Positions 9,511 through 23,403 are shown, counted from the stretch's first letter. The stretch: 52,137 bases of DNA from Guillardia theta CCMP2712 (GCF_000315625.1 NW_005434594.1:1-52137); one strand, 5' to 3'. A program made the numbers and translations. The notes: a model not told the origin generated them from the letters alone.

Positions 9511-11630
9511 ATGGACGAGCTGTGGAAGACTATGAGATCCGTGTATGGCATTGGAAAGTGATCTTCATCGCCTCCTATGCCTCGGACCTCTCCAGTATCA
9601 TTCTGTAGGATTTTGGGCAGGTAGGCATATACGGTATCTTGTAGGGTAGTCCCTGGGAATCGAGGGGTGGTTTAGGGATTTCAGTTATTTGTACCAGGTA
9701 ATTTGAGACCTTACGAAATTGATTTGAAATGTTCACTAGAATAATTTTTATATGTCGATAAATAACAGTACAAAATGAAAAATATTTTATTTTGCTGCCA
9801 CCTTGTCCTTTACCCCTTGATGCTGGCATAGATGCAAACCATCTGCTGATGTGGACCATTGGATGAGAAGCAGTTGAGAGAGACAATGACACAGGTGAAT
9901 CAGAAGCCCAACATGCATGTGTGCTTGAAGGCTTGCGACGGATGTGTGATTCGGAAGCTTACACATGTGCTTTGAGTTTTTCAATGAGAGTTTTCCTCCA
10001 AAATATTTTATTTTGCTGCCTCCTTGTCCTTTGCTGATGCGGACCATTGGATGAGAAGCTGTTGAGAGAGACAATGACACAGAAGGTATCGCAGATATCT
10101 GGAAGGCATGCAGCCCAATGATCGTTGTGAGAGCATTCAAACGGATAATCTCCGTGTTTCACTTCCCTTGTTACAACACTGCGCGCTGGAGAGTTCACAG
10201 ATACTCTGCAGAGATGACTAGCTTCTCAAGAGACTTTCAGATAGAATTCCAGCAAGAAAAGCATGCAGGCTTGATTTTGACATATATATTCCTGGATTCA
10301 AATGAATACTTGCTCTGTCGCAGAAAATTATTGTTGATGCAAAGCTTGACATCTGACTTGCAGCGAAAAGCAGCACACTTGCTGCTCAGATGCAGAGATG
10401 TTAAACCAAGCTTTATTTGAGAGGACCCTCAACTTTGGTTTAGTAAACTATCATTAAGCTCAAATTCAATCTACCATATTGAGTGGAGGAGGTTATCTAA
10501 CATATGGAAACACACTCTGACAATCTGATTATTACGATCAGAAAATCACAAGTGTTGCATGAATCAGTATCGTAGACCATAAATTTTATAGGAGAACATC
10601 CGCTTCGCACCTGCCTAGAACATTTAAAATGAGGCTACCTACATCTGATTGATGGTACAATGCAGCTATGAGGAAAGCTTAAACGCATTTGGGAAATTTC
10701 CTCAAATTTTTCCTGGCCCAAACTTTCTTCATTGTCACGAGTCTTTCCATACCATCTTCGAAGAAGCAACATCCTCTTCATACATTTACATGTGTCCATG
10801 CTTCTTCATACGTTTGCATGTGTCCATGTTAACTGTTGCAGGTTCTGACAGAAATCCTGTGTAAACCTCAGAATGTGCTTCATAGGGGTTGAGAAGGTAA
10901 ATATGACTGGGCGGCTCATCTGCAGGAAAATCTTCAAGGCTATTCAAAACTTTCCAAACATGAGGAGGATACGATTTATCCTAGACAAACACATGACGAC
11001 AACGCCTTGTGTTGTGTTGCTCCCGGCATGTAACATGCCAAAGCCCCATTGACGGTGAAATTCGCATCCTTGCTTGCCATGCAGTGTTGCTTGTAGAAAG
11101 AGAATGCTTGGGATCTCGAGAGACTCTGCTCAATCATCACAATCTCATGCTCTGTTGTAGAATGATGCCATTCCAAACATAAATCCTCTTTGACTTAAAA
11201 CTTTGAGTAAAAGTCTTTGGATGCGGTGGGACGATTTCCACCCACCCCACATAGATTTTGGGGTAAGCAGTACCGGTATGTTGTGACATTCTGTACGGGA
11301 TTGGAAGTTCCTGGTAACAATATGTAAACATCATGTATGTGTTTATATATATAAAAATAAATAAAACGAAAATGATACAAATGTCTAACTGACTCCTACA
11401 AAAATAGCTATGAGATATTTGAACAAAAACACGCTGTATTAAAAACTAATTCAACGACCCCTCTCGAACAATCCATGTACCACCACCCCCTTATTCAGGG
11501 GAAACCACCGGGTCATTAGTCATAACCGGTACTGGGAGATCGAGAACTGACAAAAAGCAACTTTTCCTTGGTTTTTCCTGGGCGAAATCCTACAGAATGT
11601 ATTCTCCCCTCGATTGCCTTCATCATCTAC
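9511..11630 (+). pseudogene. Gene remnant interrupted by the CACTA-like element and truncated by tandem array 1
   Basis: Removing 9599-11599 plus one TAT gives MDELWKTMRSVYGIG(1-bp frameshift)VIFIASYASDLSSILPSIAFIIY, which reads through the insertion site. Confidence 0.5.
9599..11599. mobile_element. Non-autonomous CMC/CACTA(EnSpm)-like DNA transposon, 2001 bp
   Basis: TIR CATTCTGTAGGATTT is perfect for 15 bp (20/23 extended). 3-bp TSD TAT at 9596-9598 and 11600-11602. Internal duplication (~9779-9894 vs ~10000-10083) and a decayed minus-strand ORF. Confidence 0.8.
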
Positions 11631-12590
11631 CTACCTCTGAGAGGGAAAGCACTACCCCCTCTAGGCTACGAGTACCACCCCTGTATCATCTTTTCATAGA
11701 GATCTGCCGTAACCGGTACCTGATGCTAGTGGTGGTGTGTGAAAAACTTCGATACGACCGTTATATTATGCGGAGACTACCTACCTCTGAGAGGGAAAGC
11801 ACTACCCCCTCTAGGCTGCGAGTACCACCCCTGTATTATCTTTTCATAGAGAGCTGCCGCAAGCACCGGTACCTGATGCTAGTGGTGGTGTGTGAAAAAC
11901 TTCGATACAACCGTTATATTATGCGGAGACAACCTACCTCTGAGAGGGAAAGCACTACCCCCTCTAGGCTGCGAGTACCACCCCTGTATCATCTTTTCAT
12001 AGAGAGCTGCCGCAAGCACCGGTACCTGATGCTAGTGGTAGTGTGTGAAAAACTTCGATACACCCGTTATATTATGCGGAGACTACCTACCTCTGAGAGG
12101 GAAAGCACTACCCCCTCTAGGCTACGAGTACCACCCCTGTATCACGTTTTCATAGAGAGCTGCCGCAAGCACCGGTACCTGATGCTAGTGGTGGTGTGTG
12201 AAAAACGATACGACCGTTATATTATGCGGAGACTACCTACCTCTGAGAGGGAAAGCACTACCCCCTCTAGGCTGCGAGTACCACCCCTGTATTATCTTTT
12301 CATAGAGAGCTGCCGCAAGCACCGGTACCTGATGCTAGTGGTGGTGTGTGAAAAACTTCGATACACCCGTTATATTATGCGGAGACTACCTACCTCTGAG
12401 AGGGAAAGCACTACCCCCTCTAGGCTGCGAGTACCACCCCTGTATCATCTTTTCATAGAGAGCTGCCGCAAGCAGTGCCGCAAGCACCGGTACCTGATGC
12501 TAGTGGTAGTGTGTGAAAAACTTCGATACACCCGTTATATTATGCGGAGACTACCTACTACCCCCTCTAGGCTACGAGTGGTAGTGTGCC
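11627..12590. repeat. Tandem array 1 of a 153-bp unit (6 units plus a partial)
   Basis: Unit starts at 11627, 11777, 11930, 12083, 12233, 12386 and 12551. Confidence 0.97.
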
Positions 12591-20795: not shown

Positions 20796-21189
20796 GTGCC
20801 ACCTTTTAGCGGTTTAGAGAGCAAGAACAGCTGCTCAAGATCATTGCGAGTCTTGTGGTTTTTGAACCTAGCAACTTGGCCCAACACAAGATGTGCACAC
20901 TGTGACATAGTAGACACACTGGCAGGGCCATGGCACTTTCGAATGCTGGTCCGATCATCTCTCTTCGTCTATGGCATGATGAGCATGTTTTCAGTTCTTC
21001 GCCGCTGGGGCACAACATAGCTTTGCCCGCCAAAAAATTGATTTGAATTTTCTCGTGACATTCCGGCTGCCATGGCATGCAGCCCCCCCTAAATTCCCCG
21101 CCATAGCGCCCCGAACGCACTCAGTGCTGCATGGAGGCACGATGCCATGATGCCAATGATGATGCTGAGGCGGGGGGGTATTGCTCGCC

Positions 21190-23403
21190 GTGGAGGCGCT
21201 CTCGAAAATCTGCTCAGAAGACTAACAGCGAAGGCAATGTCTGCTCTTGTGCCATTTGCGATATACAGAATTGTCCCAAGAAGTGCTTGATACTGCCGTA
21301 CTGCAGATTTGTCTAGCTGAGCAATTCTCCTTCAAGATGATAAGTCCGCATGTACAAACCAGGAAGGATCGTAAACACTGAACGCAGAGGAATTCCGAAC
21401 TTGTCAATCAGTTGTTCAATGAAATGTTTCTGACTCAGCGTGATAGTCCCTTTCTTTAAATCTTGATGAACACGAATCCCAAGAAATGTACCAGTTGCTT
21501 CACTTCCAGAAAAATCAAATACCTTGCTCAGCTGATTCAGAAAATGATCACATACTTCCTGATTTTCACACACAATAAGAAGATCATCCACCCATGTCGT
21601 AATGAGAATTCTTGAACCGTTGTGTTCATATCTGTAAATAATTTCATCATGTCCCCGGTGACAGGCGCAGGAATTCTCGACTCCCGACAGCTTTTCCCAC
21701 CATCGTCGCGGAGCCGTTCGCGTCCCATACTAGTATCGCTTTGGTTACTTTGAGCAAAACATTCGGAGGCAAAGCCATGATGTCAGGCGGTATCATGAAC
21801 ATCGGTTCGTTCAATTCACTGTATAGGAACGCTGCCGCGATATCTCGGAAGGCGATAATCCATCCATTTCCTGCCGCTATGCTGAGTAACAAGCCCGAAT
21901 GTTATCCATCGACGTCGTCGGCGCAAACAACTCCTTGGACGTGGGTAAAAGATTGCCCATCACAACCAACCTTGCTTTTCTCTTCAGAATGTTGCCATGT
22001 AAATCTTTCTTTGAGGAATAAACCCACATCGCTCTCGCAAGAATTTTGCCTCGTGTTTCATCAGACCTCGGGACCACTTCCCAAACTCGCCTTTCTTCCA
22101 TCTTTTGAATCTCAGCTCGTTCAGCTGCCTCCCACAATTCTCTATCCTTGTGCAACAACATCTCCCTTCGATTGCGAGGATCTGCCGTCGAACTCGAGTC
22201 TTGCACTGATGGCGGAGCTCGCGACAGAAATGCTGCAGAGAGTTTGACAGCTTCCCATACAGGAACAACTAGCGCCATGTTGGTGACAAGCATACGAGAG
22301 TCTGGAAAACATTGTGTCAACTCACTTGTACCAAGATCAATACAGTCTGGATCACGAGCAACATCAATGTCATAGGCAAAATCCGTACGTTCTCACTGTC
22401 CGGATGGATTAATATCCAGTACTTGTCGTCAAACGTAACACGCACCAAGAATGTATCATCTTTGAAGACAACTTGAGTAATCGTCCCCGTTCGAACCTTC
22501 CCATTATCCATGACAACTTCAGCCCGCCTGTTGATGAAGCGGTTTTCGGCATCCCGTCTCTGCTTACGAAAGTCTCGTCTGGTACGACATGTTTTGGTCG
22601 ACGACGCTGCCTCTGTATCCGTATGCAATCCGCATCCTCTTGTCCACCGTCAACCATCACTGCAGGCACATAATCTTCATCGCTATCCTGGCACAACATC
22701 TCAGCAGCCCTTACTCCCTCATCCAACCGTGTTCGCTTTCGACGACCACTAGTCCGAGCATTTACTGCCTCTGACCGTTCATCTTCAACACCCTTGACAG
22801 ACGAACTTCCGAATCATCCTCCATGTCAATGTGTTGCACTATATCGTGCTTTACCACCACTTCAGGATCCTCTTGCCAATTCATCCGTCCCGCACGTCGA
22901 AATGGAAAGAAGAATTCATCACAGGTCAGATTATTCGTGTGATAGATTTTGTTGTCGTCAACACACCATACCAAGTAGCCAATGGTATGCCCAGGAAAAG
23001 CGTTTGCATTTCCGAGCATCATGAATGCCCTGTTTAGCTAGATCTTCAAACTTCGAACTGCGTACATTATTCTTGAAGAATGTCATACACCCAAAGGTCA
23101 GAGTCTTGAGAGATTTGAAGTCGAAAACATCTCCATTATAGATTGTATACGGAGAAAGATTGCCAAATTTCCTGAAACTCGGGAGTGCATTGTACAGGTA
23201 CGTAGCCTGCATAACAGAAAATTCCCATTTCTCGATAGGCAAAGCACTCTGTTTGAGCAAAGTTCTGTGGATAGTACTGACTGCTCGAATTCCTCTCTCA
23301 GCCAGCGAATTGTAGACTTGACTGTAATCAGGAATCCGATCCCACTTCAAACCTCAGTCTCACGAACGAATGCCTCCAACTCTGAAGAAGAAAACTCACT
23401 GCC
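21190..23403 (-). pseudogene. Copia pol remnant: integrase C-terminal half plus reverse transcriptase, multiply frameshifted
   Basis: GSEFSS, NSLAER, ATYLYN, FGC, KARLVVMG, FAPT, DIAAAFLYSEL, WVDDLLI, FLGIRV, LSQKHFIEQLIDKFG and YQALLGTILYIANGTRADIAFAVSLLSRF. Confidence 0.92.

Follow-up and report, generated by a model that had tools for sequence, protein, structure and literature searches.

Tandemly arrayed gene clusters form by segmental duplication and expand by unequal crossing-over. Cassettes that occur at several loci can also result from gene capture by Helitrons or Pack-MULEs; Helitrons have the termini 5'-TC ... CTRR-3' with a subterminal hairpin, and they insert between A and T without a target duplication. 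Furthermore, tandem repeats in promoters that alter expression have been described in yeast. The locus described here lies in the nuclear genome assembly of Guillardia theta CCMP2712, in the first 52 kb of the 408.5-kb scaffold C80 (52,137 nucleotides, hereafter the window), and is built from tandem copies of a unit with a 153-bp repeat array, a spacer of sequence relics and a gene of the Pfam family DUF8249 (PF26754).

The block is an ordinary product of segmental duplication and not a Helitron-like or otherwise new mobile element. It is probably a young DUF8249 tandem gene cluster that was founded by segmental duplication and then enlarged by unequal crossing-over, and that carries a promoter minisatellite and trapped relics. 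Like tandemly arrayed gene clusters in general, it has one orientation, one duplication junction, truncated neighbour genes in each unit, a variable copy number and secondary loci; it differs from them in that the units also carry a 153-bp minisatellite from the gene's own upstream region. It resembles Helitron or Pack-MULE capture in that fragments of different sources adjoin each other and several loci have the cassette, whereas conserved termini, terminal inverted repeats (TIRs) and Rep/Hel are absent here and the fragments are ancestral synteny plus an old retroelement relic. As in the yeast promoters, a non-coding repeat of variable length adjoins the core promoter on its upstream side, and the gene evolves fast; the unit here is long, however (153 bp, on the scale of minisatellites), and it may affect expression. 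An earlier note on this DNA had proposed an undescribed selfish or dosage-tuned module whose array serves two purposes, which is not supported as stated. The annotation is accordingly corrected: the supposed novel system is a normal tandem cluster, and its odd contents come from ancestral synteny and decay. For the comparisons below, 87.1 Mb of assembly in 669 contigs were searched, and coordinates are window positions unless a contig is named.

Units of the tandem block

Tandem Repeats Finder (TRF), a repeat finder and self-BLAST divided the block at 11627-21200 into three full head-to-tail units of 2.5-2.9 kb and a truncated fourth. The order within a unit is 153-bp array, spacer of about 1 kb and minus-strand gene. 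The arrays or unit bodies start at 11627, 14570, 17473 and 19984 (19937 if the partial repeat unit is counted), and the fourth unit ends near 21200.

Unit A: array 11627-12558; spacer 12559-13591; gene 13592-14506, minus strand
Unit B: array 14570-15069, a gap, then 15179-15369; spacer 15370-16383; gene 16384-17217, minus strand, followed by a gap
Unit C: array 17473-17858; spacer 17859-18844; gene 18845-19864, minus strand
Unit D: array 19937-20328; spacer 20766-21200; without a gene

The unit bodies are 98.2% (A and B), 99.5% (A and C) and 97.6% (B and C) identical. Such head-to-tail units of high identity, which share one novel junction, are what defines a tandem duplication. The nuclear genome of Guillardia theta was found to be haploid by quantitative PCR (PMC4007541), so the differences from unit to unit lie between paralogues and not between alleles. 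In unit D, the array and 435 bp of spacer are separated by a 413-bp insertion, and the truncated spacer ends at 21200 against unrelated dispersed repeats, which begin at 21201. No fourth gene copy was found within the window.

Array A has a TRF score of 1602 with 94% matches. In 153-bp units, the arrays measure 6.1 (A), at least 4.5 (B, with a gap inside), at least 2.5 (C, which starts at a gap) and 2.3 (D). The gap inside array B, 15070-15178, is drawn as 109 N, and the register with array A predicts 109 bp plus a multiple of 153 bp. With the second gap, 17218-17472, the beginning of array C is lost along with the promoter and codons 1-26 of gene B; the assembly shows 255 N where the register predicts 257 bp plus a multiple of 153 bp. 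Both sizes fit the register and are thus compatible with continuous in-register sequence, which makes continuity across the two gaps plausible. Array lengths and unit number remain uncertain, and the gaps may hide any number of 153-bp units. The three full copies with a partial fourth and the variable length of the arrays, both reported in the earlier note, stand.

Relics in the spacer and the origin of the array

The spacer is a mosaic of relics that match different dispersed sequences of the genome, and its components are best described in unit A.

12559-13591: spacer A, relic mosaic; repeated at 15370-16383 and 17859-18844, and partially at 20766-21200
12603-12951: fragment of a dispersed repeat, 72-83% identical to a 2.3-kb dispersed repeat
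12990-13238, plus strand: shard of a Tcp11 gene, amino acids 222-258 and 338-369 of 811, now in different frames; 84-94% identity by tblastn
13237-13591, minus strand: ancestral 3' flank or 3' untranslated region of the DUF8249 gene, 91-94% identical to the flanks of the paralogues on contig C11 and 93% to a related metagenome contig (L040)
13401-13490, plus strand: Ty3/Gypsy reverse transcriptase-RNase H relic of about 29 amino acids, Pfam RT_RNaseH_2, E=0.02

The Tcp11 shard (spacer positions 432-680) has 90-95% DNA identity to two segments of Tcp11-domain genes on C11 (Pfam Tcp11, E=1e-44), which are clustered and highly similar to each other. Compared with these parents, the shard has lost 180 bp between GGAG microhomologies and a further 11 bp. 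A retro-copied spliced fragment was considered as its source and rejected, the missing 180 bp being no GT-AG intron. On C11, a minus-strand DUF8249 gene at 810.5 kb is followed by a trace of the 153-bp unit at 812.75 kb and a plus-strand Tcp11 gene at 813.6-815.8 kb, and this order and orientation match the gene, array and shard of a window unit. Divergence from C11 is alike for the components: 88.9% identity for the gene with its 3' flank (864 nt), 91-94% for the 3' flank and 90-95% for the shard. Tcp11 genes adjoin DUF8249 genes on C11 only; an alternative in which the two form a conserved gene pair was therefore dropped. The synteny, the similar divergence and the restriction of the adjacency to C11 together indicate that the shard is the remnant of an ancestral neighbour and not a captured gene.

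The RNase H relic is 52-62% identical to the RNase H portion of Ty3/Gypsy pol open reading frames (ORFs) of 1,150-1,310 amino acids in this genome, and the one pol ORF that was scanned contains RVT_1, RNase H, integrase and chromo domains. The relic lies within the gene 3' flank of all copies of the subfamily, including those on C11, and is hence older than the amplification. The TCP11-like and Gypsy RNase H fragments named in the earlier note are thus both real, while the captured origin assigned to them does not hold.

At 13237, Tcp11 codon 369 is joined to the start of the gene 3' flank, which runs on past this point in C11 and in the metagenome relative. This junction is common to all window units and to the further copies of the cassette on contigs C154, C94 and C16. 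The same spacer, with identical 180-bp and 11-bp deletions in the shard, is found on C80, C154 and C94, and C16 has the junction and part of the shard. Since all copies have the junction in common, it formed once, by duplication of a segment that reached from the 3' flank into Tcp11.

The 153-bp repeat is closely tied to the gene. All 27 of its genome matches adjoin this DUF8249 subfamily, on C80, C154, C94, C16 and C11, and it was not found beside more divergent DUF8249 paralogues; the genome-wide co-occurrence of repeat and gene that the earlier note had set as a test is accordingly present within the subfamily and lacking outside it. Between the array and the first ATG are 64 bp, and the motif listed next lies about 20 bp from the array end.

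14543-14550, minus strand: TATATAAA box, 37-44 nt upstream of the first ATG and directly after the last 153-bp unit, as read from the sequence

The box may function as a TATA box. Stretches of about 45-60 bp of the 153-bp unit occur once upstream of each C11 paralogue, and the related metagenome contig has about 1.4 diverged tandem units upstream of its gene. A non-coding tandem repeat in the promoter-proximal region is what is called a promoter minisatellite, and in our reading the array is probably a non-coding minisatellite of promoter-proximal sequence. Two other identities were considered and set aside. A coding repeat was suggested by a plus-strand ORF of 336 amino acids in array A, which is a chance frame and is not kept open in the other arrays: in arrays C and D of C80 and in those of C154 and C16, each of the six frames is broken by several stops, and the best frame of array B by one. 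An array of RNA genes gained no support from Rfam (no match to the 153-bp unit up to E=1), from ARAGORN (no tRNA) or from folding, where the gene strand scored z=-1.2 and the opposite strand z=-2.7, the latter value dependent on pairing between units. Because the array abuts the putative TATA box and appears to derive from promoter-proximal sequence, a regulatory role is plausible, and the number of units may modulate expression. Of the two functions that the earlier note had given to the array besides recombination, the regulatory one is thus plausible and the non-coding RNA one is not supported. The copies form a natural series of 2 to at least 6 promoter-proximal units before near-identical genes, which is usable for the study of minisatellite-length effects in a cryptophyte.

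From these relations a sequence of events can be proposed. The ancestral locus would have resembled C11, with a minus-strand DUF8249 gene, its upstream region and a divergently oriented Tcp11 gene. A segment from the gene 3' flank, with the Gypsy relic already inside, into Tcp11 would then have been duplicated, creating the novel junction at 13237, and the trapped portion of Tcp11 would have decayed through deletions. The 153-bp repeat may have arisen from the gene's own promoter-proximal sequence, where it sits immediately 5' of the presumed TATA box. Unequal crossing-over would have multiplied the unit to at least 3.3 copies on C80 and 2 on C154, and pieces of the array would have been copied to C94 and C16 via segmental duplication. 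The product would be a protein with a length-variable coiled-coil stalk and a compact domain of 165 amino acids that appears to change faster than neutral sites between paralogues.

The DUF8249 gene and its protein

Three copies of the gene are present in the window, and each has one public gene model that begins at an internal Met.

13592-14506, minus strand: DUF8249 gene copy A, ORF of 304 amino acids; public model 13592-14371, 259 amino acids, starting at M46
16384-17217, minus strand: copy B, readable 834 bp identical to copy A; public model of 160 amino acids
18845-19864, minus strand: copy C, ORF of 339 amino acids; public model of 295 amino acids

Copy C differs from copy A by an in-frame 108-bp insertion, which adds 36 coiled-coil residues, and by 6 substitutions. 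The window proteins are identical or nearly identical to public proteins of G. theta CCMP2712. A precomputed PF26754 domain is recorded on P0001, the representative of their 90% cluster, and on relatives. The window proteins thus have the coiled coil and C-terminal domain of DUF8249, and differ from some relatives, whose leader is signal-peptide-like, in that the window subfamily lacks such N-termini. The gene had been called an orphan in the earlier note, a label that does not survive: about 20 paralogous DUF8249 loci are present in the genome (34 six-frame matches over about 16 contigs), and an exhaustive phmmer search with the 165-amino-acid C-terminal domain gave 69 related clusters, from G. 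theta paralogues, a dinoflagellate transcriptome and environmental contigs. The literature search found no paper that names DUF8249 or PF26754.

The family architecture consists of an N-terminal leader, a coiled coil of in-frame tandem repeats and the C-terminal domain. The coiled-coil repeats, of 21, 33, 54 and 87 bp (21 and 33 bp in copy A), determine how long the helical stalk is; they all lie within one exon, so that they are no exon-intron cassettes, and they differ in every paralogue. For the C-terminal domain, AlphaFold2 with a 63-sequence alignment gave a model with pLDDT 91.9 and pTM 0.88. Foldseek of this model against PDB and BFVD gave no match at E<=1e-3, and the best Z in an exhaustive VIA-align comparison was only 3.4; about 10 of the weak VIA-align rows resemble HEPN-type helical domains and a few resemble helix-turn-helix domains, all with Z<4, which is a lead at most. 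Sequence profiles of Pfam, PHROGs and PDB gave no functional match for the domain, and the protein atlas gave no usable one. The C-terminal domain is therefore best described as a confidently predicted fold without a solved or viral structural match. DUF8249 is of interest as an expressed, expanding family with an unmatched predicted fold and with more amino-acid-changing than silent change between recent paralogues.

Two side observations concern other members of the family. At C47:470000-491000 (L010-L012, L017), three tandem DUF8249 paralogues that are 48-54% identical to the window gene are separated by assembly gaps. In a related metagenome protein, P0004, F stands at the likely cleavage site behind a signal peptide, and this leader looks like a cryptophyte plastid-targeting leader.

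Six UniRef proteins of G. theta fall in the same 90% cluster as the window proteins, with the diagnostic residues of the A/B type and of the C type both represented; their accession series, we assume, derives from transcriptome assemblies. Some of these transcript-type proteins end in EYVNEPVPPL rather than EYGEA, and the following feature accounts for it.

13544-13602, minus strand: optional GT-AG intron of 59 nt at the end of the coding sequence (CDS); splicing swaps GEA* for VNEPVPPL*

Removal of this canonical intron would give exactly the EYVNEPVPPL ending, and the exon that encodes NEPVPPL follows directly after a CAG acceptor in all three units. Transcript-type proteins of both variants, together with the ending that the intron explains, point to a subfamily that is transcribed and spliced, and from more than one copy.

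The earlier note had further stated that the gene stays open while the surrounding DNA gathers indels. The similarity of the units is too high for such a contrast to be seen. Between A and C there are 6 substitutions in 915 bp of CDS and 2 in 982 bp of spacer, and among local copies divergence of the CDS is no lower than that of the spacer. All spacer indels fall within 12580-12850, and the remaining 740 bp of spacer are free of them. In the 495 nt of the domain, local copies have 0-2 differences, which gives no power for the detection of purifying selection. The comparison with C11 is more informative: for the domain of C80 and C11 copies, the proportion of nonsynonymous differences (pN) is 0.13-0.15, that of synonymous differences (pS) 0.08-0.10 and the divergence of the 3' flank 0.06, and the excess of nonsynonymous over synonymous plus flank change has a Fisher p of 1e-3 to 1e-4. 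All compared ORFs are intact, and omega is about 0.5 against the older C47 paralogues. The pattern suggests diversifying change on a constrained scaffold in the DUF8249 domain. Of the dN/dS comparison among paralogues that had been proposed with the earlier note, the part between C80 and C11 thus yields a nonsynonymous excess and the part among local copies is without power.

A bolder interpretation would make DUF8249 a family of the conflict or recognition type in cryptophytes and other protists, in which a variable coiled-coil stalk presents a structurally novel domain under diversifying selection, with dosage and expression tuned by unit number and promoter minisatellite and, possibly, circle-mediated spread. 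We consider this rather unlikely.

Dispersed copies, competing explanations and flanking sequence

The cassette occurs on C80, C154, C94 and C16, and these four loci have eight different homology ends. On C80 the homology ends at 11599 and 21200, and on C94 at the window-equivalent positions 8231 and 14060. On C154 one end lies inside an array and the other 20 bp upstream of the ATG, and on C16 the ends lie inside an array and at spacer position 577. C154 holds a two-unit block without an assembly gap. Around and within the block of the window, the following additional features bear on its history.

8231-9598: left flank shared with C94, 99.3% identical to C94:135524-136892 (1.37 kb); on C94 it abuts the array directly
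9599-11598: dispersed 2-kb TIR element with 23-bp TIR arms at 9599-9621 and 11577-11599; at least 10 genomic copies at 94-99%
20329-20741: Tourist-like miniature inverted-repeat transposable element (MITE) of 413 bp inserted in the final unit of array D; its TIRs measure 35 bp and its target duplication is TTA

The 2-kb TIR element is absent from the C94 copy and inserted after the duplication that links C80 and C94. The Tourist-like MITE has at least 6 genomic copies at 91-98% and is recently active.

The earlier note had offered Helitron-type capture as one of two known routes. On this explanation the cassette would be a mobile element without autonomy, either Helitron-like or some other transposon that captures genes, which acquired the gene and two shards and was multiplied by transposition. 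The presence of near-identical cassettes (97-99%) on three contigs and of an older cassette on another, the mosaic of unrelated pieces in the spacer and a PIF1-like fragment 1.2 kb upstream of the DUF8249 gene in the metagenome relative L040 would agree with such an element. However, the eight ends over the four loci include none in common, and neither TIRs nor long terminal repeats (LTRs) terminate the units; within 9000-22000, inverted repeats were found in the 2-kb element and the MITE only; on the absence of TIR and LTR from the unit, the earlier note was right. No Rep/helicase-type Pfam match was found in any unit ORF. Helitron_like_N (PF14214) found no match across 87 Mb, a weak negative as control genomes gave no match either, and the six PIF1 (PF05970) matches in the genome are all on other contigs. 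The PIF1-like fragment of L040 belongs to a dispersed repeat that occurs elsewhere, the Tcp11 shard sits in the ancestral gene order of C11, and the RNase H relic predates the amplification. Given that the eight ends differ and that neither unit TIRs nor a Helitron Rep were found, a transposition of the cassette has no support; this explanation is already largely refuted, and we regard it as very unlikely. The second route offered by the earlier note, unequal crossover, is the best explanation when it acts on tandem duplicates, and a role of the array as recombination substrate is not needed once whole 2.5-kb units are repeated.

Recombination between arrays or units might also release circles (extrachromosomal circular DNA, eccDNA) that reintegrate, which would make the cassette a self-amplifying or dosage-tuning module. 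Every dispersed copy has the junction of shard and 3' flank, which exists only between adjacent tandem units or in a circularised unit; the C154 block starts and the C16 copy ends inside an array, and array length varies between units. The same junctions would arise, however, if a portion of a tandem array were simply duplicated as a segment, and the C94 copy includes 1.37 kb of unique C80 left flank, which is not expected in a one-unit circle. None of the remaining ends falls in an array, their positions being in the spacer, in the gene or 20 bp upstream of the ATG, and such circles are an unlikely source. An assembly artefact, with fewer or more units than drawn and repeats mis-joined across gaps, is quite improbable as an account of part of the block. 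Two gaps fall exactly at array boundaries, the units are 97.6-99.5% alike, and transcript-type proteins without an exact source in the assembly mean that some copies are probably missing or mis-assembled; on the other side, the units are told apart by specific indels, by array length and by the 108-bp in-frame insertion, the haploid state of the genome (PMC4007541) makes the differences non-allelic, both variant types occur among transcript-type proteins, the gap sizes agree with the register, and C154 provides an independent, gap-free two-unit block.

Several points weigh against the reading as a tandem gene cluster with a promoter minisatellite, or against parts of it. The cassette may have reached C154, C94 and C16 in more than one way: its ends there tend to fall in or near arrays, which would also fit reintegrated excised circles. 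Array evolution is ambiguous in direction, with loss from C11 as an alternative to gain on C80. At two of the three junctions between units the assembly has gaps, so that the count of units and the lengths of arrays depend on a draft scaffold. When set against synonymous sites alone, the nonsynonymous excess reaches only p=0.03-0.18, and gene conversion could distort the comparison with the flank. The transcript-type proteins have no exact genomic source in the assembly (93-96% identity, with differences in the coiled coil), which hints at unassembled copies or at noise of transcript assembly in repeats.

Other elements and repeats were also encountered. In the middle array of the C154 two-unit block, a 5.2-kb element (C154:98685-103919, L013/L018) has 34-bp TIRs and is flanked by the 8-bp target duplication CGGAGACA. 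No Pfam family was matched by ORFs of the 2-kb element or of this 5.2-kb element, where they reach 480 amino acids, and the C154 transposon is for this reason left unclassified. An ORF of the left flank of the window block, 8598-9275 on the minus strand, had no Pfam match. The 2.3-kb dispersed repeat to which the spacer fragment belongs is found at L025:3939-7975 and L026:3879-6191 (C3, C7); these parent copies are 99% alike, that of L025 is interrupted by a 1.75-kb insertion, and the ORFs of the repeat (226 and 383 amino acids) matched no Pfam family. It is probably an uncharacterised mobile element. In L040, the PIF1-like fragment, which matches a dispersed repeat, lies beside a 77-bp stretch (L040:718-794) that matches more than 20 genomic loci at 96-99% and is probably a tRNA-derived or SINE-like (short interspersed nuclear element) repeat.

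The genes that flank the block in the window are ordinary.

1746-3410, minus strand: gene for a PH+FYVE protein
4434-5270, plus strand: gene for an alpha/beta hydrolase
48544-49470, plus strand: gene for a bZIP factor

Beyond the block, five more assembly gaps are present, at 31904, 38825, 41817, 45238 and 50329. Tri- and hexanucleotide microsatellites are dense across the window, and a stretch of about 0.9 kb at 6557-7439 has an inverted second copy at 49315-50032 with 77-81% identity.

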